Virus record (IMG/VR): IMGVR_UViG_3300020084_000003
Location: 220,777-284,776 of that record
Length of the DNA: 64,000 nucleotides
Strand: one strand, 5' to 3'
This document shows, in pieces, positions 32-61,228 of this stretch. Under the pieces are notes generated by a model. It was not told the origin of the DNA, ran no database searches, and worked only from the letters and a program-made list of their open reading frames with translations. The position numbers and the translations under genes are program-made. Positions within the stretch are counted from its first letter, which is position 1, and each line of letters opens with the position of its first letter.

Positions 32-631
32 TTAATCAAAGTAGTTTTCTAATGTGAGCATAATTTTATTTTTATCATACTTTAGGAACGGATGGTATTT
101 TTCGGCCATCTTAATCACTTTCGGTGTTAACACCGGATCGGATATGGTATCAAGCCAGTAATGACCCACCTTTGATATATCCAATAATATTGAAAATGTC
201 TCTAGAGATATCTTCTTAGACAAGTATAACGAAAGAACCAGAGGTTTGTTCCCGTTTGTTACGCGGAAATTGCTCTCGAATGAAACATCATTTAAATGTT
301 TAATTTCAGATTGAAAGTTATACTCTATGGCACTGGTGATTTTCACCCATTGACGATAGACGGTCATGCCATCACTTTCGTCAACTATATCACCTATCCA
401 TTTTTGGGGATTTCTAGAAAGATTGGCAATTAAGATACCTTCATAGTCTCTCATCTTGCTCAATTTTACAAAACTAAATTTGTCTCTTCTAGTTTTAAAC
501 GAATCAAACTTCGCTCTTACTTTACCGTTATACCTGAAAAAGTCGTAGTTGTCAAGAGTGAAGTGCTGCTTTAGTGCCACATAAGTTTGATATACTGAAA
601 ACGCCTGTTGATCGAAATCATCATATACCAT
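32..631 (-). CDS. 59: T4-like helicase loader gp59
   Basis: VYQTYVALKQHF..YDFFRYNGK..F..RRDKFSF resembles the gp59 N-terminus; adjacent to gp33 as in T4. Confidence 0.85.
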   Translation of the reverse strand: MVYDDFDQQAFSVYQTYVALKQHFTLDNYDFFRYNGKVRAKFDSFKTRRDKFSFVKLSKMRDYEGILIANLSRNPQKWIGDIVDESDGMTVYRQWVKITSAIEYNFQSEIKHLNDVSFESNFRVTNGNKPLVLSLYLSKKISLETFSILLDISKVGHYWLDTISDPVLTPKVIKMAEKYHPFLKYDKNKIMLTLENYFD

Positions 632-851
632 TAGTCTCGCCTTTAATCATAAGAAGAATTTTAGCTTCTCTCTTAATCTTTTCTTTTAAAATTGGGCTTT
701 TCTTTAGTATCTCACCGACGCTCTCAAGCTCTAAATTATTTTTTTCACAATAATCTACAATTGCATCCAAATAAGAATTTCCACCCTTTATTTGTCTTTC
801 TATTTCTTTAATTATTGTATCCTGATTTAATATTCTTCTCACAGTTTGCAT
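621..851 (-). CDS. 33: T4-like late transcription co-activator gp33
   Basis: 76 aa, YLDAIVDYCEKNNLELESVGEIL..LKEKIKREA; synteny with gp59. Confidence 0.85.
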   Translation of the reverse strand: MQTVRRILNQDTIIKEIERQIKGGNSYLDAIVDYCEKNNLELESVGEILKKSPILKEKIKREAKILLMIKGETNGI

Positions 852-3103: not shown

Positions 3104-3580
3104 AACGAATTCACTAGATTTATTTGCAACTCTATCCGCACCAAATGATGCAGCAAATGCATCTGGTTTTAATTTAGGAGAAATTCCTGTTACACCCAAA
3201 ATATATCCCGCAGCTTGTGAAGCAACGCAATTTGAACCATTCATAGGGTCTGTAGATATATCACAATGAATCTCTACATCAAATTCATCAATGAACCCTA
3301 CCAATTGTGTATATAGTTCGCAAACTTTTTGGACTTCATTCATAAGTCTAATGCTTGGTCTATTCTTCTTAACATCATAATCAGCTTCTACTGATCTGTT
3401 AGAGAATACTCTACATCCGTGTCTTCCATTAATGTGAACAACACATACGGTCGCATACTTGGCAAACCATCTTCCATCCTTCTTAAAGCGAACAGAATCA
3501 CATCCTAAGTAAATTTTTGTGTCTGGACCCACAGTTAATAGTAAGTCTACTAATTCTTCGATTTGTGATTGGGTGAACAT
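3101..3580 (-). CDS. RNase H-like YkuK family protein
   Basis: KIYLGCDS..YATVCVVH..G..E..EIHCDI..S motif pattern. Confidence 0.75.
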   Translation of the reverse strand: MFTQSQIEELVDLLLTVGPDTKIYLGCDSVRFKKDGRWFAKYATVCVVHINGRHGCRVFSNRSVEADYDVKKNRPSIRLMNEVQKVCELYTQLVGFIDEFDVEIHCDISTDPMNGSNCVASQAAGYILGVTGISPKLKPDAFAASFGADRVANKSSEFV

Positions 3581-3597
3581 GTCATTTTCCTTCTATA

Positions 3598-4296
3598 TCA
3601 TTTTACTATCTTAAACCTTTTCTCTTTGTCAAGTTCTTTTTGAACAAGAGCCTCGATTTCCTTAGCTTGTTTTTCAATACCTTGAATTATTGCATTCCAA
3701 GTCTCTATTCTCGGAGCATCTGGATTTGCAGTGACATAGTAAACCAAATTACCATAAATTCTCAGCAAATTCTGATGGACCTTGAATAGTATGTTTTTGT
3801 CAACTTCAATTTCATAGAGGTTTTCTATTTCATCCATCAAGTTGACAAAATTTTGCTTACGCTTATTGTTGTCAGCAAAACCGTATAGGTCTAATAGAAC
3901 TAATTCTTGTCCTTCATTAGACATTGGTGCATGATTTATAGTTGTTAAAATATAATCTGCAACTTTCTCAGGCTGGATCACACCGAACGGCATGAATACC
4001 TTTTCTGGAATTGCAGAAAGATTGCCGATGACATTTTTAACAACACCATAAAAATCATATGCACTTCTAATTTCTTTATTATCTTCCTTGTCATAAACAA
4101 TGTCATGGAAAAGAATTGCAACATCCAAATTAATATCATAAGGAATTTTCAATTCTTGAGCGTAACTATACAAGTCTACAATGTGCTGCATGTTGTGATA
4201 TGTGCGGCCTGTAGGGTTCATGTATTTCATTGCTGCGTGATTCCATATACCATCTTTATTTAGTTTAGTCCAAGGTATATTGTCAATTATTTTCAT
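3598..4296 (-). CDS. HD-domain metal-dependent phosphohydrolase
   Basis: RTYHNMQHI..AILFHDIVYD..NKEIRSA. Confidence 0.75.
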   Translation of the reverse strand: MKIIDNIPWTKLNKDGIWNHAAMKYMNPTGRTYHNMQHIVDLYSYAQELKIPYDINLDVAILFHDIVYDKEDNKEIRSAYDFYGVVKNVIGNLSAIPEKVFMPFGVIQPEKVADYILTTINHAPMSNEGQELVLLDLYGFADNNKRKQNFVNLMDEIENLYEIEVDKNILFKVHQNLLRIYGNLVYYVTANPDAPRIETWNAIIQGIEKQAKEIEALVQKELDKEKRFKIVK

Positions 4297-37990: not shown

Positions 37991-38064
37991 TGGCAGGGGC
38001 GGCAGGAATCAAACCCGCGCTAAATGGTTTGGAATCACTTGTGCTATCATTACACCACACCCCC
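37991..38064 (-). tRNA. tRNA-Trp(CCA)
   Basis: AGTGA-TTCCAAA-CCATT, G73, CCA; T loop TTTGATT. Confidence 0.85.
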
Positions 38065-39707: not shown

Positions 39708-40325
39708 ATGAGCAATATACATTCAGAACGTTACAAAAAATTAATAAATTATTATAAAAATACTATAGTTGAAGGATATGTTGAAAAGCATCATATAATG
39801 CCTAAATGCTTAGGCGGTTCTAATGACATATCGAACTTGGTGGCATTGCCGCCACGCGCACACTATATAGCACATTATTTACTATGGAAAATGTATCCTG
39901 AAAATAAGAAGATAGCACAAGCGTTTGGTATGATGGCAGTAAACAATCCGTATCAACATAGAGTTATAAATTCTAGATTTTATGAATTGGGTAAAATTGC
40001 CAGATCAAAAGCACTTAAAGGTGAAAAGTTCAGCGAGGAAAGAAAGCAAAAGATGCGTGTTCCTAAAAAATCTACCGATGCATACAAAAAAATGAAAAAT
40101 GGTGCAGGAAATAAAGGCAAAAAATATAGACCACGAGAAAAAGAACATATAGATAATCTTAGATCAGCAGCGTCATGGTATTACGAAAAAAGAAAGAATG
40201 ATACTAAAGAAAAAATGAAGATATATAGAGAAGAATTTATAAACTCTGGGATGACTAGGAAAGAATTTGCTGAATTAAAAGATGTAAACTACGTAACTAT
40301 GAAAAGATATCTGAAAGGTTTGTAG
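39708..40325 (+). CDS. HNH homing endonuclease (Mob-like)
   Basis: EKHHIMPKCLGGSNDISNLVALPPRAHYIAH; late promoter at 39672-39679. Confidence 0.85.
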   Translation: MSNIHSERYKKLINYYKNTIVEGYVEKHHIMPKCLGGSNDISNLVALPPRAHYIAHYLLWKMYPENKKIAQAFGMMAVNNPYQHRVINSRFYELGKIARSKALKGEKFSEERKQKMRVPKKSTDAYKKMKNGAGNKGKKYRPREKEHIDNLRSAASWYYEKRKNDTKEKMKIYREEFINSGMTRKEFAELKDVNYVTMKRYLKGL

Positions 40326-43036: not shown

Positions 43037-43723
43037 ATGAAATACATAGTATACCAGATAACAAACAATGTCAACCACAAAATATATATCGGAGTTCACA
43101 AAACTCACAATGAGCATGACACTTACTATGGTAGTGGAAATGCAATCAAAAAAGCAATCACAAAATATGGAAAGCACAATTTCACTAAGGATATTTTATT
43201 CACTTTTGATAATCCTAAAGAGGCTTTCGAAAAAGAAGCTGAATTGGTGACTAAAGAATTTGTCAAGTCAAATAAAAACTATAATCTAAAAATAGGTGGG
43301 TGGCATCCAAACGACATTGAAAATTCATACAAAATGATATCCGAAACCAAATCAGGAGTTGCTACGACCAAACATACTGAGGATAGCAAAGAAAAGATAC
43401 GAAAATATAGAAAATCTGTTGTCACCATAAATGATGGTAATGTTGAAAAACGCCATCCTAAAGATTTAGATATACCTAAAGGTTGGAAATTAGGTAGACT
43501 TGATAAAAATAAACAACAAAGAACCCCAAGAACTTATCTTTACATTTCAGAAGAAGGTGAAACACAAAGAATAACCAACTTAAAGAAATGGTGTGACGAA
43601 AATAATCTTAATTATTATAATATAAATGACTGCATTGACAAAGGTATTATTAGACCATCTACTAATAAACAGTCACCTACCAGAATTTTCATGATAGGCA
43701 AAGAAATTAAACGTATTGATTAA
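43037..43723 (+). CDS. GIY-YIG homing endonuclease
   Basis: YIVYQITN..KIYIGVH..YYGSG..E..YN. Confidence 0.88.
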   Translation: MKYIVYQITNNVNHKIYIGVHKTHNEHDTYYGSGNAIKKAITKYGKHNFTKDILFTFDNPKEAFEKEAELVTKEFVKSNKNYNLKIGGWHPNDIENSYKMISETKSGVATTKHTEDSKEKIRKYRKSVVTINDGNVEKRHPKDLDIPKGWKLGRLDKNKQQRTPRTYLYISEEGETQRITNLKKWCDENNLNYYNINDCIDKGIIRPSTNKQSPTRIFMIGKEIKRID

Positions 43724-44732: not shown

Positions 44733-44828
44733 TTCAGGAATATATTTGTGCCCACCATCGGGCGATTCGCAAAATGCTGCAAATATAGGAGTCGAACCTA
44801 TAAGTTTTGTTTGCTGTAATATTCCTTT
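44733..44828 (-). ncRNA. CAGCAA-handle RNA copy B (T-arm cargo)
   Basis: GGAATAT-TACAGCAA..ATAGG-TTCGACT-CCTAT..ATATTCC-TGAA. Confidence 0.7.
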
Positions 44829-45138: not shown

Positions 45139-45255
45139 GATTGATTTGCATACATGTTACCATTACACCACAAGTAGTTTTACCTACCAGCAGGGATTCG
45201 AACCCTGATCTTCCTTGTCGAAAAAGATTTGCTAAAAATTGCTGAAACAATCCTT
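45134..45255 (-). ncRNA. CAGCAA-handle RNA copy D (permuted T-acceptor-D cargo)
   Basis: CAGGG-TTCGAAT-CCCTG, CTGGTAG..CTACTTG, GTG-TAATGGTAA-CAT; handle GGATTG/CAATCC. Confidence 0.75.
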
Positions 45256-45749: not shown

Positions 45750-45835
45750 TGGCGGTTCAGGCAGGACTTGAACCTGCACCCTTTTCGGACACCGGGCTTT
45801 TTACCCGGCGATGGCTACCATTTCATCACCGAACC
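45750..45835 (-). tRNA. class II tRNA-like gene with a non-canonical loop (UAAAAAG)
   Basis: Leu-like D arm, variable arm, T arm, G73-CCA; CCGGG-TAAAAAG-CCCGG. Confidence 0.55.
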
Positions 45836-48576: not shown

Positions 48577-49080
48577 TTATTCATTATAGCTAAATTTTCT
48601 AGCTGCTTTAGAAATGTTAGTATGATGGACATTGAACATTTCTCCTAATTCTCTTGAAGAATATTTTCCACCATTTTTCTTTGCATTTTTAATTATAAAC
48701 TCAACTTGTTCTTCTGTTAGCTTAGAACCAGAATTTTTTATTCGTTTTTTAGCTTTATTTAACCCCATCTTAAAAGCGTGTTGAACATTTTCTTTCCCTG
48801 TAACCCATTCTAGATTAGAAACAATATTATTATTCTTATTCCCATCTTTATGATTTACCTCTGGTAAGTCATTTAAATTATCAATGAACGCCATTGCAAC
48901 TAAACGATGTATTCTAAAACATTTACATACTCCCTCTACTCTAGTAGATAATACAGAATATCCAGACTTAACCTTACCTTGTTTTAAAATCTTATTCGTT
49001 CTTTTAGAAAATACTCGCCCCATATTGGAAATTATGAATATGGTTTCATAACCAACAACATCTTTCCAAATTTCTTTCAT
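48577..49080 (-). CDS. NUMOD4-HNH homing endonuclease
   Basis: EIWKDVVGYE..ISNMGRV; IHRLVAMAF..EVNHKDGNKNNN..NLEW. Confidence 0.9.
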   Translation of the reverse strand: MKEIWKDVVGYETIFIISNMGRVFSKRTNKILKQGKVKSGYSVLSTRVEGVCKCFRIHRLVAMAFIDNLNDLPEVNHKDGNKNNNIVSNLEWVTGKENVQHAFKMGLNKAKKRIKNSGSKLTEEQVEFIIKNAKKNGGKYSSRELGEMFNVHHTNISKAARKFSYNE

Positions 49081-51044: not shown

Positions 51045-51173
51045 TGGTGTCTAGGGTTGGACTTGAACCAACATCTACTCTAAAAGCCTTGCTGCTTTAT
51101 AATGGAGCGATACAACCATATTGTTTCAATGGTAGGGCTTACCTTTCGCCCAATTTTACGTATACACCCAGAC
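51045..51173 (-). ncRNA. 129-nt tRNA-like RNA with an expanded core
   Basis: Acceptor GTCTGGG/CCTAGAC-A-CCA and T arm GTTGG-TTCAAGT-CCAAC flank an oversized interior. Confidence 0.6.
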
Positions 51174-52885: not shown

Positions 52886-53488
52886 TTAGAATTTGTAGAT
52901 AGCGCGAACACCAACAGTTTCTACGTCAGCAGTAAAGCCTTCGGCACCTTCAAACACGTTCTGATTAAAACCAGAATTGCCTAGATCGGTGCGGCTGTAT
53001 TTACCACCAACAACTAGATTGTCGGTAACTGCATAGTCAATACCTACGCCATATGTTGAAGAATCTTCTCCGTCAACTTTGGCATATCCTGCGGAAATGT
53101 ATGGCAGGACGCGATTGAATGCGTAACCGGCTTGTGCTTCTGCGGTATAAGTCTCAGCACCACCACTTTCAAATAGGCTTTCAGTTTTTTGATAACCTAG
53201 CTCACCACCCAGAACAAAGTTGTTCTCGAATTGATGACGATAACCAGCTACAACACCATAGGTAGTTGCGGTATCATCGCGGCTCTCAAACTCAAAATCT
53301 TCTGCAAAATCTAGATCAACAGCGGTGCGGGCGACTGTGCCACCAACATATGCACCTGACCATGAAAATTGTGGTGCGGTCACAACGGCAACTGGTTCAA
53401 CTTCAACCACCGAAGAAGTGTATCCACCAGCGACAGCGCCGGTAGCTAGAAAAGCTGAAAGACCAGCAGCAATAACAAATTTGTTCAT
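52886..53488 (-). CDS. outer-membrane beta-barrel protein (Omp25/Omp31/RopB-like)
   Basis: Signal peptide, WSGAYVGG, GYRHQF..FVLGGE, PYISAGYA, C-terminal YKF. Confidence 0.85.
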   Translation of the reverse strand: MNKFVIAAGLSAFLATGAVAGGYTSSVVEVEPVAVVTAPQFSWSGAYVGGTVARTAVDLDFAEDFEFESRDDTATTYGVVAGYRHQFENNFVLGGELGYQKTESLFESGGAETYTAEAQAGYAFNRVLPYISAGYAKVDGEDSSTYGVGIDYAVTDNLVVGGKYSRTDLGNSGFNQNVFEGAEGFTADVETVGVRAIYKF

Positions 53489-53824: not shown

Positions 53825-54367
53825 CTACTTATTCCTATTTTTATTTTTTAAAGTTTCTGAAATCTTTCTTTTGGTTTCTTCTGAAAGAATTCTTTTTGGT
53901 CTTTTCTTTGCCGAATCAGATAATTTTTGTCTATATTCATCTGATATGATCCCCCTTTTCCCTTTATTCCAAGGTTCAATTTCACCATTAGCAATTCTTC
54001 TTTTTAAGGTCTGATTTCTTCGCATCTTTGCGTTTTCATCATTCCTAATAAGTTCTTTAGTTTTCTCTGAATGTGTTTTACCTTTAAAATGTGGGCCACC
54101 CTCACCACCAACACCCAGATTGTATGTATCTTCTCTCAAACAGAAATCCTCTGTTATGAGTTTTTTCTCCATTAAGTTCATTTCTTCTTCATTATCAAAA
54201 ACAAATAAAACTTCTTTGGTGAAATTATTTTTACCATACTTCTTTATAGCATTAACAATCAATCTGCCTGAACCCATGTAAGAGTCATCGGGCTTCATGG
54301 TTTGATGTTTCCCAATATAAATTTTACCGTTAACATTGTTAGTTATTTTGTATATAGTATAGAACAA
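53825..54367 (-). CDS. GIY-YIG homing endonuclease (SegB-like; TTG/GTG start re-called)
   Basis: YTIYKITN..KIYIGKH..YMGSG; NUMOD3 motifs; the longer track ORF overlaps the upstream gene. Confidence 0.85.
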   Translation of the reverse strand: MFYTIYKITNNVNGKIYIGKHQTMKPDDSYMGSGRLIVNAIKKYGKNNFTKEVLFVFDNEEEMNLMEKKLITEDFCLREDTYNLGVGGEGGPHFKGKTHSEKTKELIRNDENAKMRRNQTLKRRIANGEIEPWNKGKRGIISDEYRQKLSDSAKKRPKRILSEETKRKISETLKNKNRNK

Positions 54368-54434
54368 TTGCACCTTCCTCTTATAGATAATATCTCTATT
54401 ATTTATAATCAGAGGAAGGTGCGTTAGACTACTT

Positions 54435-55025
54435 TCACCAATAGTCCCAGATTCGGGCTTTACCGTTTTTGTTATCTTGCCACACCATATCATCTGCGGC
54501 ATCAATGTCAAGCATGATCTTTTGGATGTTCTTTTTGTCAGAATTTCTACGGTCACGCTTGGCCGCGTTTTTAAAACCAGTGCTGCGACCTGTTTCAGAC
54601 ATTTTACCATCACGGCTCATGCTATCAAAGTAATCAGAATGTTCTTTGTAGTTTTCTTTAAAGAAGCGATCATAATCACCGTGAAATGGGACTTTACGAA
54701 TTTTACCCGGAAAATAACCGTATGGTTTTATTGGGTGGGCATAATAAAAATGAAACAGCCTGTCATTACCGTAGCTTGCCATCCATGTAGCACGATTCAT
54801 TTGATAATCGAAAAGCTGCTTATTATACTCTTTCATTTTAGCATCGTATTCGGCTTTTCTGGCTTTATATATTGCCTCATATTCGGCTTTAGGAATTTTT
54901 TCCCACACAAAACCATATTTTATGGCACGAGTAAAATCTCTATCAATCATTTTCTTGATATATTTTTCTTTGATGCCATTTTCGAACCAGTAAAGGCTCT
55001 TTTTGTTTCTATAGGTTTTACCCAA
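54435..55025 (-). CDS. hypothetical protein
   Basis: RBS AGGAGA. Confidence 0.6.
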   Translation of the reverse strand: MGKTYRNKKSLYWFENGIKEKYIKKMIDRDFTRAIKYGFVWEKIPKAEYEAIYKARKAEYDAKMKEYNKQLFDYQMNRATWMASYGNDRLFHFYYAHPIKPYGYFPGKIRKVPFHGDYDRFFKENYKEHSDYFDSMSRDGKMSETGRSTGFKNAAKRDRRNSDKKNIQKIMLDIDAADDMVWQDNKNGKARIWDYW

Positions 55026-59841: not shown

Positions 59842-60360
59842 TCATTTAGGTTTAGACCAATATCCTCTCGGTGGTTTAACTATACCCAATGAAACACATC
59901 TTTTAGAGATAGCTTTATCAGAAACATTGTATCTTTTTGCGATTTCAGTTGTAGGAATTTCCCACACTAATTTCTCAAGTTCTTCTTTACTTATCTCAAA
60001 CTTTCTTTTCTTCATAGCACTACAAGCTACCGAACAGCATTTTCTAGGGCTACTTTTTCTATACTCGAAATTTGTTCCACACAATTCACAAGTATATGTA
60101 ACAATCATTCCACCACGATCTTCAAGCATATGAAGTCTAGCATGTTCAGATTTAGTCATAACTTGCAAATTATCAATCTTGTTATTTGCTTTGTCTCTAT
60201 CTTTATGGTGAACTACCTCATCTTCATTAAGAAGTCTACCAGTTTCTTCATACACTACATAATGGTGTTCATTCACTTTACCGTATTTATCCGCGCAAGG
60301 ATGGTCAGGTATTATAGCATACATATATCCTCGGGACTTATCTAAAGTAAATTCTACCAT
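59842..60360 (-). CDS. HNH homing endonuclease with Zn ribbon (start re-called at MVEFTL)
   Basis: EHHYV..EVVHHKDRDKANNKIDNLQVMTKSEHARLH; CELC..CCS..C. Confidence 0.85.
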   Translation of the reverse strand: MVEFTLDKSRGYMYAIIPDHPCADKYGKVNEHHYVVYEETGRLLNEDEVVHHKDRDKANNKIDNLQVMTKSEHARLHMLEDRGGMIVTYTCELCGTNFEYRKSSPRKCCSVACSAMKKRKFEISKEELEKLVWEIPTTEIAKRYNVSDKAISKRCVSLGIVKPPRGYWSKPK

Positions 60361-60384
60361 ATCATTTCTCTCATTATATAAAAT

Positions 60385-60465
60385 TGGCACTCCCGACAGG
60401 ATTCGAACCTGCATCTGCCATCCAGTTACGCTATATAGTTTAGAAGACTACCACGATACGGGAGC
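60385..60465 (-). tRNA. D-armless tRNA-Arg(TCT)-like RNA
   Basis: GCTCCCG/CGGGAGT-G-CCA; anticodon arm GTAGT-CTTCTAA-ACTAT only 7 nt after the acceptor; D-loop-like AACTGGAT in the variable region. Confidence 0.65.
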
Positions 60466-60476
60466 AAAGTAATTAA

Positions 60477-60760
60477 TTCCGATTTATAGATAATCGGGAA
60501 CTGCGCGAATAATCGGGCACCAGAGGACAATTTGTTTTATGCATTTGCTACTATCAGCTTGTCACGACTGACAATGCACATTAACCACATGGGCGGATAA
60601 CTGTCAAGTTCCAATGAGTTCCGATTTAAGGATAATCGGGAACCGACCGTGAGGTTTAATACTCACCGACCACCAGAGGACAATTTGTTTTAAGTGTTTG
60701 TTACTACTGAACTGCCAAATCCAGCAACACTCATTAACCATATAGGTAGATAATTGTCAA
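60477..60760 (-). repeat. tandem duplicated promoter + structured RNA unit (60477-60607, 60619-60760)
   Basis: Shared TTGACA..TGGTTAATG, TAGTA, AAAACAAATTGTCCTCTGGTG, TTCCCGATTATC..AAATCGGAA. Confidence 0.8.
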
Positions 60761-61087
60761 TTTCTAAAACGTCGCACCTGACACAATTTTAAGGATGTAA
60801 AGCCATCCACCATCTAGATATGATTAAATCGCTTTGCATTGCGATAAACTCTTGGCTCATATACTAGTGGCCTCTTCCTTCCTTGTCAAGTAGGATTTTG
60901 CGGTCTTTTGCTTTATACGACGAATTCTAATAATTGTTGTGACTTTCTAGAGGGTATGTTGACTTTCCTCTAACGCTTTTCTCCCATTCACAAACGATCC
61001 GGCTGGCCCAACAAGAAACTTATGTCTCCAATGAGACTGCTTGAAAAGCCCTAAGTCAACGGCCCGGATTCTTTAAAAAGTATTTTG

Positions 61088-61205
61088 CTCGGGCGGCAGG
61101 GTTCGAACCTGCGACCACCTGATTACTTTTGAAGCTTCCCGAATCGAACGGGTATTTACCTTTAGCTTCCACAGTCAGGCGCTCTACCAACTGAGCTACA
61201 CCCGA
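61088..61205 (-). tRNA. tRNA-Asn(GTT) interrupted by a 45-nt insert in the anticodon
   Basis: CCTGA-CTGT|45 nt|TAA-TCAGG; 118 nt = 73 + 45; G73; CCA not encoded. Confidence 0.8.
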
Positions 61206-61228
61206 GCAAAATACTCTTATTTAATTTT

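Follow-up and report, generated by a model that had tools for sequence, protein, structure and literature searches.

A miniature-tRNA-shaped, intron-like insert in the anticodon of a phage tRNA-Asn gene

Introns that interrupt tRNA genes in the anticodon loop are known from several settings. Bacteria are not known to have a protein-based tRNA splicing machinery, and the only described introns in bacterial tRNA genes are self-splicing group I introns, as in cyanobacterial tRNA-Leu(UAA), which are about 200 nt or longer and fold around a P1-P9 catalytic core. In archaea and eukaryotes short introns are instead excised by proteins, the EndA/Sen endonuclease cutting at a bulge-helix-bulge motif and RtcB or Trl1 joining the exons. 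Phage T4 can reseal a broken anticodon loop, with cleavage by PrrC followed by healing by Pnkp and sealing by Rnl1, but this pathway repairs damage and does not remove encoded sequence. The closest precedent for the element described here is the set of "enigmatic" tRNA-like introns found in the anticodon loops of Lak megaphage tRNAs (Devoto et al. 2019, Nat Microbiol, PMC6784885), which have remained unexplained because Lak phages are uncultured. They are 79-114 nt long, occur in Tyr, Phe, Thr and Gly tRNAs, and each contains an acceptor-like stem plus a T arm; the Lak Thr intron even scores as a tRNA.

The element analysed here lies in a 64,000-nt stretch (the window) of IMG/VR virus record IMGVR_UViG_3300020084_000003, positions 220,777-284,776, from a jumbo phage. 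Like the Lak introns, it is an anticodon-loop insert too small for a group I or II intron, has no Rfam match as a whole, contains an acceptor-like stem plus a T arm, and occurs in a T4-related jumbo phage of the same broad group (2.2 in PMC7824862); for neither is a mechanism known. The Lak introns begin with a small hairpin and an AUUAAA linker, end 1-3 nt after the acceptor-like stem and, by our reading, sit at 36|37, whereas the element described here is 45-47 nt long, lacks the 5' hairpin and linker, sits at 35|36, starts one base after the splice site and has a 5-nt AAWAG tail. There is no detectable sequence homology between the two: a covariance model of the present insert gave E of about 1 on the Lak-A1 tRNA region. 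An exact Lak pattern is absent from IMG/VR. The phenomenon is seen here in a minimal, 45-nt, strongly covarying form, which points to an undescribed way of splicing tRNA in bacteria; and because it is also present, overlooked, in two cultured phages, one of which infects the genetically tractable Agrobacterium tumefaciens C58, the question of who cuts and who joins becomes directly testable.

The split tRNA-Asn gene

The preliminary description of this locus, a tRNA-Asn gene split in its anticodon by a 45-nt insert resembling a tRNA elbow, proved correct in every sequence element that it named. The Rfam tRNA model (RF00005) matches window positions 61088-61205 on the minus strand end to end (59 bits against a threshold of 29, E 3e-10, model positions 1-71), with about 48 unaligned bases in the anticodon loop. 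The gene has a full cloverleaf but lacks a contiguous 7-nt anticodon loop, and ARAGORN in default mode misses it. The 118-nt precursor runs from nucleotide 1 (61205) to the discriminator G73 (61088). The 5' exon (61171-61205, minus strand) comprises tRNA nucleotides 1-35 and ends C32-U33-G34-U35; the 3' exon (61088-61125, minus strand) comprises nucleotides 36-73 and begins U36-A37-A38. Removal of the intervening 45 nt (61126-61170, minus strand) restores CCUGA-CUGUUAA-UCAGG and gives a 73-nt tRNA-Asn(GUU) with U1-A72 and G73, up to 92% identical to 79 unique intronless viral tRNA-Asn genes, all of which are 73 nt long with G73. No other tRNA-Asn is present in the window. With introns allowed, ARAGORN calls the gene tRNA-His(gtg) with a 25-nt intron, but this was rejected because of G73, because there is no G-1/C73, and because the same register gives Tyr in a homologue from Agrobacterium phage Atu_ph07.

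The insert, which is unique in the window (0 matches expected by chance), reads as a single G, a stem P1, a bulge J, a T-like hairpin, the 3' strand of P1 and the tail AAAAG, the stem, bulge and hairpin also appearing in the predicted fold. An always-unpaired purine at 61170 precedes the 5' strand of P1, GAAGCU (61164-61169, insert nucleotides 2-7), which pairs with AGCUUC (61131-61136, insert nucleotides 35-40). Between them lie the J bulge AAAGGUAAAUA (61153-61163), a D-loop mimic containing GGUAAA, and the T-arm mimic CCCG-UUCGAUU-CGGG (61138-61152), all on the minus strand. At the sequence level the requirements of a T-loop/tRNA elbow motif are fulfilled, namely a 7-nt UUCRANY loop closed by a G-C pair, with a GG partner loop. 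Docking of the GG onto the T-loop is inferred by analogy with G18-G19 and psi55-C56 in tRNA; neither formation of the three-dimensional elbow nor its recognition by RNase P was measured here. The tail (61126-61130, minus strand) is complementary to C32-U33-(G34)-U35-U36, and its AG pairs with C32-U33 in the predicted folds.

Where the preliminary description had the acceptor stem extended to 12 bp, the 5' leader (61206-61218, minus strand) in fact pairs over 13 consecutive base pairs with G73 plus the trailer, GCAAAAUACUUUU (61076-61088, minus strand), extending the acceptor helix to 20 bp. As had been stated, CCA is not encoded: the trailer after G73 is CAA, whereas all 25 other tRNAs in the window encode NCCA.

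The insert does not belong to any known class of self-splicing or self-cleaving RNA that was examined. With 45 nt and 11 base pairs it lacks the size and the catalytic core of a group I or II intron, although in the Asn- and Lys-type inserts, as in group I introns, the 5' exon ends in U and the insert in G; and covariance-model searches against Rfam of the region, and of the insert alone at E up to 10, returned nothing relevant, including no hammerhead, twister, pistol, hatchet or hairpin ribozyme. Nor is there a bulge-helix-bulge motif, which has two 3-nt bulges on opposite strands separated by a 4-bp helix, with the splice sites inside the bulges. The predicted folds of the Asn precursors from the window, from Atu_ph07 and from an uncultured contig, L008, and of the L008 tRNA-Lys precursor, show the anticodon stem, a UAA bulge, 2 bp (C32:G, U33:A), a 3x3 internal loop and then P1; the minimum-free-energy fold of the homologue from Salicola phage SCTP-2 differs. 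Anticodon-intron pairing next to a 3-nt bulge at the 3' splice site is thus shared with archaeal and eukaryal introns, but only 2 Watson-Crick pairs (4 counting G.A and U-A) lie between the sites, the inferred cuts fall at the helix ends rather than 2 nt into 3-nt bulges, the position is 35|36 and not 37|38, and the hosts are bacteria.

Homologous inserts in other phages

The preliminary description had named a search of phage tRNAs for homologous inserts as a check on its reading, and this search was positive. The same split gene occurs in five phage lineages, in phages of different hosts: the window's contig, two other uncultured contigs (L008 and L196), Atu_ph07 and SCTP-2. The four homologues score 46-57 bits against the Rfam tRNA model. 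The presence of the split gene with compensatory changes in four further phage genomes places the feature far beyond chance. Across the five, 99.4% of cells are paired, 20 of 32 pairs change on both sides, and 0 of 500 shuffles reach the observed values; covariation is seen at 6/6 pairs of P1, 3/5 of the T-like stem, 6/7 of the acceptor stem and 4/5 of the anticodon stem. The loop half CUGU is invariant, as are the GGU of the J bulge (the following residue is A in four of the five), and the closing G-C pair and UUCRA of the T-loop, which reads UUCGAUU, UUCGAAU or UUCAACU; the AAWAG tail is conserved. The T-like stem is 5 bp long in the other four phages. The nucleotide at -1 is U in all five and that at +1 is G in four of five, and the insert amounts to 1 + 6 + 5 = 12 layers in all five. 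A covariance model built from four inserts scores 64.7 bits on the window's own copy, 59.8-62.1 bits on the other three and 42.2 bits on the fifth, which was not used to build it. The leader-trailer pairing is shared by the Atu_ph07 and L008 copies but not by the SCTP-2 or L196 copies, while the copies in L008, L196 and SCTP-2 do encode CCA.

Only the 35|36 register gives one identity, Asn with G73, in all five. The canonical 37|38 register would give His in four and Tyr in Atu_ph07, and alternative registers (His/Tyr or Thr) conflict with G73 and are not consistent across homologues. The published account of Atu_ph07 lists Asn and Thr as the only amino acids without a phage tRNA (PMC6102473). 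Both tRNAs are present, each split at 35|36, so that published tRNA inventories need correction and standard tRNA finders under-count phage tRNAs. Similar 35|36 inserts sit in two phage tRNA-Lys(UUU) genes, one contig carrying an intronless and an intron-bearing tRNA-Lys side by side. The Lys and Thr inserts look like plain long hairpins, with 3 unpaired bases before the helix in locus L294, but all three types share the site 35|36 in tRNAs with U36-A37-A38.

Strict and relaxed insert patterns found only the known contigs plus chance hits in IMG/VR and in a scan of a single metagenome, and a scan of 185,579 species genomes gave no true cellular copy. The covariance model found no second copy of this insert type in the window, in 50 kb of Atu_ph07 or in 50 kb of SCTP-2. 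Two similar-looking loci, L218 and L271, are eukaryote-type tRNA-Tyr genes with 37|38 introns and A73, and two others, L194 and L195, are not recognisable tRNAs.

Candidate enzymes in the same genome

The genome encodes, outside the window, an Rnl2-type RNA ligase (contig Ga0194110_10000009, positions 192,560-193,576) next to a Thg1-like gene. The ligase contains a PF09414 domain (44.9 bits against a cut-off of 27), weakly matches T4 Rnl2 in the PDB (2HVQ and 1S68, E 1e-3) and is 40% identical to genes annotated 'RNA ligase 2' in roseophages; its activity on this substrate was not assayed. A metallophosphoesterase, a cREC domain protein and a Macro domain protein are encoded nearby. The preliminary description had also named a search for Rnl1, Pnk or RtcB elsewhere in the genome as a check, and none of these was seen in the roughly 120 kb inspected (about 42% of the 285-kb contig: the window together with positions 164,415-231,407). 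No tRNA-splicing endonuclease (EndA/Sen) domain appears among the called genes of positions 164,415-231,407, and ten ORFs in the window's tRNA region were scanned against Pfam; as the remaining roughly 164 kb of the contig and the host genome were not examined, this leaves undecided whether such an enzyme is available. A search for related loci recovered the ligase only in the window's own contig, and tblastn of the ligase against 80 kb of Atu_ph07, 50 kb of SCTP-2 and part of a Lak genome found nothing. Atu_ph07 does have a Thg1 gene, but the 397-aa gene two small ORFs upstream of it is not a recognisable ligase.

A proposed splicing route and its alternatives

The interpretation in the preliminary description, a phage tRNA intron excised by tRNA-processing or anticodon nucleases and religated in the manner of T4, possibly as a defence-triggered tRNA supply, is partly supported. 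A structured insert in the anticodon is confirmed, conservation and covariation across five phages argue for a functional intron rather than a wreck, and an RNA ligase is encoded in the same genome; but the ligase is Rnl2-type and sits next to a Thg1-like gene, and no Rnl1, polynucleotide kinase or RtcB was seen in the roughly 120 kb inspected, so the PrrC/Pnk/Rnl1 route is not favoured, although it is not excluded, and nothing examined bears on a defence-triggered supply, although one contig does carry an intronless and an intron-bearing tRNA-Lys side by side. The Lak precedent had not been recognised. What the analysis establishes is the split gene, its conservation and covariation, its 35|36 position, its Asn identity and the ligase gene; that splicing occurs at all, which nucleases act, and any role of the tail as a ligation splint are inferred, there being no RNA data.

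The favoured explanation, held with no more than even confidence, is that this is a genuine tRNA intron that does not splice itself, the tRNA-Asn gene, the only one in the window, being transcribed as a 118-nt precursor whose anticodon loop is completed only when the insert is cut out and the exons are joined. In this view the insert folds as an armless mini-tRNA, with one unpaired purine, a 6-bp acceptor-like stem, a GG-containing D-loop mimic and a 5-bp T stem, making the 12 stacked layers of a tRNA acceptor/T-arm minihelix. Such minihelices are RNase P substrates, and armless mitochondrial tRNAs likewise have a loop in place of the D arm; the insert differs in being embedded in another tRNA's anticodon loop and in ending in AAAG instead of NCCA. 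An enzyme that reads the tRNA elbow, most simply host RNase P, would cut at the 5' end of the mini-tRNA, which is exactly the U35|purine splice site and has the preferred U at -1; a second endonucleolytic cut would follow after the AAWAG tail; and the 3'-OH/5'-phosphate ends would be sealed by the Rnl2-family ligase, possibly with the A-rich tail, complementary to CUGU|U, holding the exon ends together, while the long leader-trailer helix would keep the tRNA halves associated. Several points tell against this. The RNase P ruler fits only the Asn-type insert, and in Lak introns the tRNA-like module is far from the 5' splice site. No known enzyme is predicted to cut after AAWAG: RNase Z would cut three bases too early, and the 2-nt 3' overhang of RNase III fits only the Atu_ph07 Thr insert, the Asn and Lys inserts requiring a 4-nt overhang. 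Rnl2 enzymes prefer nicked duplexes to loops, and the proposed splint is only 4-5 bp long with a mismatch opposite G34. The ligase was not found in the 80 kb of Atu_ph07 or the 50 kb of SCTP-2 examined, and only about 42% of the window's genome was inspected. The missing CCA could instead mark a non-canonical RNA.

If this route were real in its fullest form, which is doubtful on present evidence though not excluded by it, phages would possess a third, so far undescribed route of tRNA splicing, in which a mini-tRNA-shaped intron recruits host RNase P or another elbow-reading nuclease to cut inside the anticodon and an Rnl2-type ligase reseals the loop with the intron's tail as an internal guide. 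The tRNAs affected, all carrying U36-A37 (Asn, Lys, Thr), would be kept masked until the phage's own enzymes mature them, for example to evade host anticodon nucleases.

A less likely alternative is that the intron is genuine but is cut by a metal-independent, anticodon-nuclease-like or otherwise dedicated phage endonuclease leaving 2',3'-cyclic phosphate and 5'-OH ends, which are then healed and sealed by Pnk-phosphatase plus a ligase, or by RtcB; this is the T4-like scheme, with the mini-tRNA as a handle for that enzyme rather than for RNase P. Both it and T4 repair involve phage-encoded RNA ligation acting on a broken anticodon loop, and tRNA-Lys(UUU) is among the tRNAs with a 35|36 insert. 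All three insert types lie at fixed distances from the anticodon stem whatever their shape, which fits an enzyme that measures from the tRNA body; the metallophosphoesterase, cREC and Macro domain proteins are candidate end-healing activities (PMC7824862); and jumbo phages of this group often carry RNA repair sets. Against it, no polynucleotide kinase, RtcB, Rnl1 or tRNA-splicing endonuclease domain was seen in the 120 kb inspected, and no candidate nuclease has been identified.

It is unlikely, though possible, that the gene is not spliced, and that the 118-nt RNA or fragments released from it by RNase P are the functional product, either as a two-elbow tRNA mimic that titrates a tRNA-binding defence nuclease or processing enzyme, or as a source of tRNA halves. 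The lack of an encoded CCA and the 20-bp closed acceptor helix, unlike the 25 neighbouring tRNAs, would accord with this, as would other free-standing mini-tRNA-like hairpins in the same tRNA array, for example at 44779-44814. However, the loop halves CUGU and UAA, G73 and the whole cloverleaf are kept with compensatory changes in five lineages, three of the copies encode CCA, and in Atu_ph07 the two split genes are exactly the two specificities otherwise missing from a near-complete set. Least likely is a pseudogene inactivated by a small selfish or tRNA-derived element for, although the tRNA array is full of homing endonuclease genes and degenerate tRNA-like pieces, no intact Asn copy accompanies the split gene in the window or in Atu_ph07, the insert itself is under structural selection, and exons only about 70-90% identical remain perfectly foldable.

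The split tRNA-Asn gene and its homologues

On the minus strand, positions 61088-61205 of the window match the Rfam tRNA model over its whole length (59 bits, against a threshold of 29), with about 48 unaligned bases inside the anticodon loop, although ARAGORN in default mode does not see the gene. The RNA reads UCGGGUG-UA-GCUC-AGUUGGUA-GAGC-G-CCUGA-CUGU, then a 45-nt insert, then UAA-UCAGG-UGGUC-GCAGG-UUCGAAC-CCUGC-CGCCCGA-G. The insert (61126-61170, minus strand) occurs once in the window, with none expected by chance. It consists of one unpaired G, a 6-bp stem P1 (GAAGCU/AGCUUC), an 11-nt bulge J (AAAGGUAAAUA), a hairpin CCCG-UUCGAUU-CGGG and a 5-nt tail AAAAG, and the predicted fold keeps both the cloverleaf and this architecture. 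The preliminary description of a tRNA-Asn split in its anticodon by an insert resembling a tRNA elbow is confirmed in every factual element, except that the leader-trailer pairing, which it took to extend the acceptor stem to 12 bp, is in fact longer: there are 13 consecutive pairs between 61206-61218 and 61076-61088 (minus strand), which close the acceptor stem into a 20-bp helix. The gene is also the only one of 26 tRNAs in the window without an encoded CCA, the other 25 all encoding NCCA, and it alone has such a leader-trailer duplex.

The window is the last 64 kb of the 284,776-bp metagenomic phage contig Ga0194110_10000009 (IMGVR_UViG_3300020084_000003; contig coordinate = window coordinate + 220,776). 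The flanking genes are T4-like, and include gp59, gp32, UvsX, a DnaB-type helicase, rIIB, and the td, frd and nrdAB genes. Window positions 33-62 kb hold a tRNA array on one strand, interspersed with HNH and GIY-YIG homing endonuclease genes.

Homologous inserts in other phage tRNAs, which the preliminary description had proposed should be sought, were found. The same split gene is present in four other phage genomes: Agrobacterium phage Atu_ph07 (MF403008, positions 323,905-324,023); Salicola phage SCTP-2 (MF360958, positions 298,729-298,847); a 208-kb uncultured contig, L008 (positions 3560-3679); and a 162-kb uncultured contig, L196 (positions 1817-1935), the last of which was found through its exon sequence only. 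The Atu_ph07 copy resembles that of the window in having no CCA and seven or more leader-trailer pairs; the L008 copy has CCA and pairs at 9 of 10 positions; and the SCTP-2 and L196 copies have CCA and no duplex. The P1 stem reads GAAGCU/AGCUUC, GAUACU/AGUAUC, GAGCAU/AUGCUC, AGAGGC/GCCUCU and GGCCUU/AAGGCC in the five genomes, while the T-like stem reads CCCG/CGGG, UUCAG/CUGAA (twice), UGUGG/CCACA and UCAGG/CCUGA. On the five-sequence alignment 99.4% of cells form standard pairs and 20 of 32 pairs change on both sides, including all 6 pairs of P1, 3 of 5 in the T-like stem, 6 of 7 in the acceptor stem and 4 of 5 in the anticodon stem. None of 500 shuffles and none of the slid registers comes close. 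The invariant or nearly invariant features are the unpaired purine at insert position 1; GGU in the J bulge, followed by A in four of the five; the G-C pair closing a UUCRANY loop; the AAWAG tail; and the exon loop halves CUGU and UAA. A covariance model (R1) built from four inserts scores the fifth, unseen insert at 42 bits (E 2e-7). Pattern scans of the metagenome collection, and of one genome for each of 185,579 prokaryotic species, returned no further true copy, so that, as far as these patterns can see, the element is confined to a few jumbo phages.

Only removal between U35 and U36 gives the same anticodon in all five genes, namely GUU, for Asn. The canonical 37|38 register would give His(GUG) in four genes and Tyr(GUA) in Atu_ph07, and the -1 register would give Thr(GGU). 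All five genes have the G73 discriminator and U1-A72. The spliced 73-mer is up to 92% identical to intronless tRNA-Asn genes in viral contigs, and all 79 unique examples recovered are 73 nt long with G73, 50 of them having U1-A72. ARAGORN in its intron mode calls the gene tRNA-His with a 25-nt intron, which is taken to be an artefact. There is no other tRNA-Asn in the window. The published description of Atu_ph07 lists Asn and Thr as the only amino acids without a phage tRNA (PMC6102473), but its tRNA-Asn is present as the split gene.

Comparison of Rfam hits with ARAGORN calls showed that the phenomenon is wider than tRNA-Asn. In Atu_ph07 (segment L188, positions 40109-40214, minus strand, equal to MF403008 about 335,108-335,213) there is an unannotated tRNA-Thr(UGU) with G1-C72, C2-G71 and A73. 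It carries a 33-nt insert, UUUG|...|UAA, comprising a 9-bp hairpin AAAAUUUUC/GAAAGUUUU, the loop GGUAGGUUUCGAG and the tail CA, so that the second tRNA reported as missing from Atu_ph07 is also present. Excision of this insert would leave a hairpin with a 2-nt 3' overhang, as RNase III products have. Contig L008 has, at 3279-3401 (plus strand) and directly upstream of its split Asn gene, a tRNA-Lys(UUU) with a 49-nt insert, CUUU|...AACAG|UAA. A further contig, L294, has at 523-636 (plus strand) a tRNA-Lys(UUU) with a 41-nt insert ending in CAG before UAA, which sits right after an intronless Lys(UUU) paralogue (443-518, plus strand). All of these inserts lie at 35|36, and the 3' exon always starts U36-A37-A38. 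The Lys and Thr inserts fold as long hairpins without a clear T-loop, and there were no homologues with which to test them by covariation.

Comparison with known introns and the enzymes available

At 45 nt and 11 base pairs the insert cannot be a group I or group II intron, and neither the region nor the insert alone matches any Rfam family other than the host tRNA. Nor is it a bulge-helix-bulge intron. In the predicted folds of the window, L008 and Atu_ph07 Asn precursors and of the L008 Lys precursor, the layout is the anticodon stem, a 3-nt UAA bulge, two pairs (C32:G and U33:A), a 3x3 internal loop containing the 5' splice site, and then P1; the SCTP-2 minimum-free-energy fold differs. The splice sites fall at the ends of a short helix, not two bases into 3-nt bulges, and the position is not 37|38.

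Devoto et al. in 2019 reported "enigmatic", highly conserved introns in Lak megaphage tRNAs and noted that the Thr intron may itself encode a tRNA (PMC6784885). Their Table S6, together with folds of the Lak-A1 locus computed here, shows that each Lak intron is 79-114 nt long, with a 5' hairpin, an AUUAAA linker and a tRNA-like module (an acceptor-like stem plus a GGUUCGAAU-type T arm) that ends 1-3 nt before the 3' exon; on the present reading they lie at 36|37. Lak, Atu_ph07 and SCTP-2 fall in the same broad jumbo-phage group (PMC7824862). No later paper that explains these introns was found, and there is no detectable sequence homology between them and the present element. Poorly understood introns in phage tRNAs were therefore already known; what is new here is the minimal, strongly covarying mini-tRNA shape, the unusual 35|36 position, and the presence of the element in cultured phages, which makes the mechanism experimentally accessible.

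Exact-protein look-ups along the contig revealed a 338-aa RNA ligase about 27 kb upstream of the window, at contig positions 192,560-193,576. It matches PF09414 at 44.9 bits, its only PDB matches, both weak, are T4 Rnl2 (E 1e-3), and it is 40% identical to phage genes annotated "RNA ligase 2". Two genes downstream lies a Thg1-like 3'-5' nucleotidyltransferase (97 bits). The Rnl2-family ligase, a 62-aa ORF and the Thg1-like gene form a small module (segment L318, 10001-12045, equal to contig about 191,532-193,576) beside NAD-salvage genes (NAMPT and a NUDIX/cytidylyltransferase-like protein), and a calcineurin-like phosphoesterase, a cREC domain protein and a Macro domain protein are nearby. 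Rnl1, polynucleotide kinase and RtcB had been named in advance as the enzymes to look for elsewhere in the genome, but none of these, and no tRNA-splicing endonuclease domain, was seen in the roughly 120 kb examined. Atu_ph07 also encodes Thg1, in a similar NAD-salvage neighbourhood (segment L323, 19846-20634) but with no recognisable ligase next to it, and no ligase was located in the parts of Atu_ph07 or SCTP-2 examined. A paper on a relative states that RNA ligase ORFs related to Atu_ph07 exist (PMC11242549), which is indirect evidence only. In a collection of phage genomes, all 15 Lak megaphage records gave Thg1 hits, but so did many Rak2-like and other jumbo phages in which split tRNAs have not been looked for, so any correlation between the two is untested.

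A proposed route of excision, and alternatives

The split gene, its covariation and its position are read from the sequences, whereas everything about how it works is inference. In this view, selection has maintained three things in five lineages: a perfect tRNA-Asn in two pieces, the two loop halves, and a precise insert architecture; and the simplest reading is that the insert is removed to make the phage's tRNA-Asn. The insert would be an armless mini-tRNA, in which one mismatched purine, 6 bp of P1 and a 5-bp T stem give 12 stacked layers, the length of a tRNA acceptor/T-arm minihelix, capped by a T-loop and with a GG-containing D-loop mimic available to form the elbow. This is the determinant that bacterial RNase P uses to measure its cleavage site, although cleavage was not assayed here. 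The measured site is exactly the U35|purine junction, with the favoured U at -1, and G at +1 in four of the five genes. RNase P leaves 3'-OH and 5'-phosphate ends, which are the ends an Rnl2-type ligase needs. The conserved AAWAG tail is complementary to C32-U33-(G34)-U35-U36, and after the second cut it could hold both exon ends as a nicked mini-duplex, the substrate form that Rnl2 prefers, while the 13-bp leader-trailer helix would keep the halves together. Against this, no known enzyme is predicted to cut after the tail; the 12-layer ruler does not fit the Lys, Thr or Lak inserts; the proposed splint is short and mismatched; and nothing shows that splicing happens at all. That the insert is a true intron that is spliced is considered likely, whereas the RNase P step is only a tentative suggestion, and the combined statement is held with no more than middling confidence.

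The interpretation in the preliminary description is partly supported: the intron reading is well supported, but the specific T4-style Pnk/Rnl1 mechanism, and the idea of a defence-triggered tRNA supply, are not supported by anything tested here. Of the alternatives, the strongest, though still unlikely, is that a dedicated or anticodon-nuclease-like endonuclease makes the cuts and the ends are healed before ligation, which is favoured by the fixed 35|36 position regardless of insert shape. Less likely again is that the RNA is an unspliced tRNA mimic, or a source of tRNA halves; the missing CCA and the closed acceptor helix of this copy favour such a role, but it is contradicted by the CCA-bearing copies and by conservation of the loop halves. 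A pseudogene is very improbable, being contradicted by the covariation in both the exons and the insert.

Other features of the tRNA arrays

A free-standing mini-tRNA-like hairpin lies at window 44779-44814 (minus strand), about 50 nt upstream of tRNA-Arg(CCU), with a GCAAA/UUUGC stem, a 7-nt bulge and then UAUAGG-UUCGACU-CCUAUA. It has the same architecture as the insert but lacks the GG bulge, and is a weak hit of model R1 (16 bits, E 0.85). An orphan T arm (CAGGG-UUCGAAU-CCCUG) lies at 45190-45215 (minus strand), downstream of tRNA-Thr(UGU). Separately, at 51047-51172 (minus strand), a T arm plus acceptor 3' strand ending in ACCA has its complementary 5' strand (GUCUGGG) about 120 nt upstream, although the fold of that stretch is not significant (z = -0.5). 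These may be degenerate or heavily interrupted tRNAs.

At 60388-60465 (minus strand) a tRNA-like gene with a UCU anticodon has almost no D arm and 19 extra bases before the T arm (Rfam 36.8 bits), and is overlapped by the HNH ORF at 59842-60414. A second tRNA, at 37994-38064 (minus strand), is found by Rfam only, while the tRNA-Phe(aaa) called by ARAGORN at 45750-45835 (minus strand) is not confirmed by Rfam. Between the odd tRNA-like gene and the split Asn gene, at 60426-60741 (minus strand), two small ORFs translate to similar peptides (...FPIIYKSELI... and ...FPIILKSELI...), which suggests a repeated DNA segment. Five homing-endonuclease-type genes (HNH, NUMOD4 and SegE-like GIY-YIG/NUMOD3) are scattered among the tRNA genes, at 39708-40325 (plus strand), 43037-43723 (plus strand), 48577-49080 (minus strand), 53825-54613 (minus strand) and 59842-60414 (minus strand), and an outer-membrane beta-barrel-like ORF lies at 52886-53488. 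In contig L008 a degenerate class-II-like tRNA (3453-3541, plus strand), which both tRNA finders miss and whose anticodon arm is poorly paired, lies between the split Lys and split Asn genes; it has a Leu-type variable arm (GUGGAGAAAUCCAUG), a T arm, the acceptor pair CGGAAGA/UCUUCCG and a CCA end.
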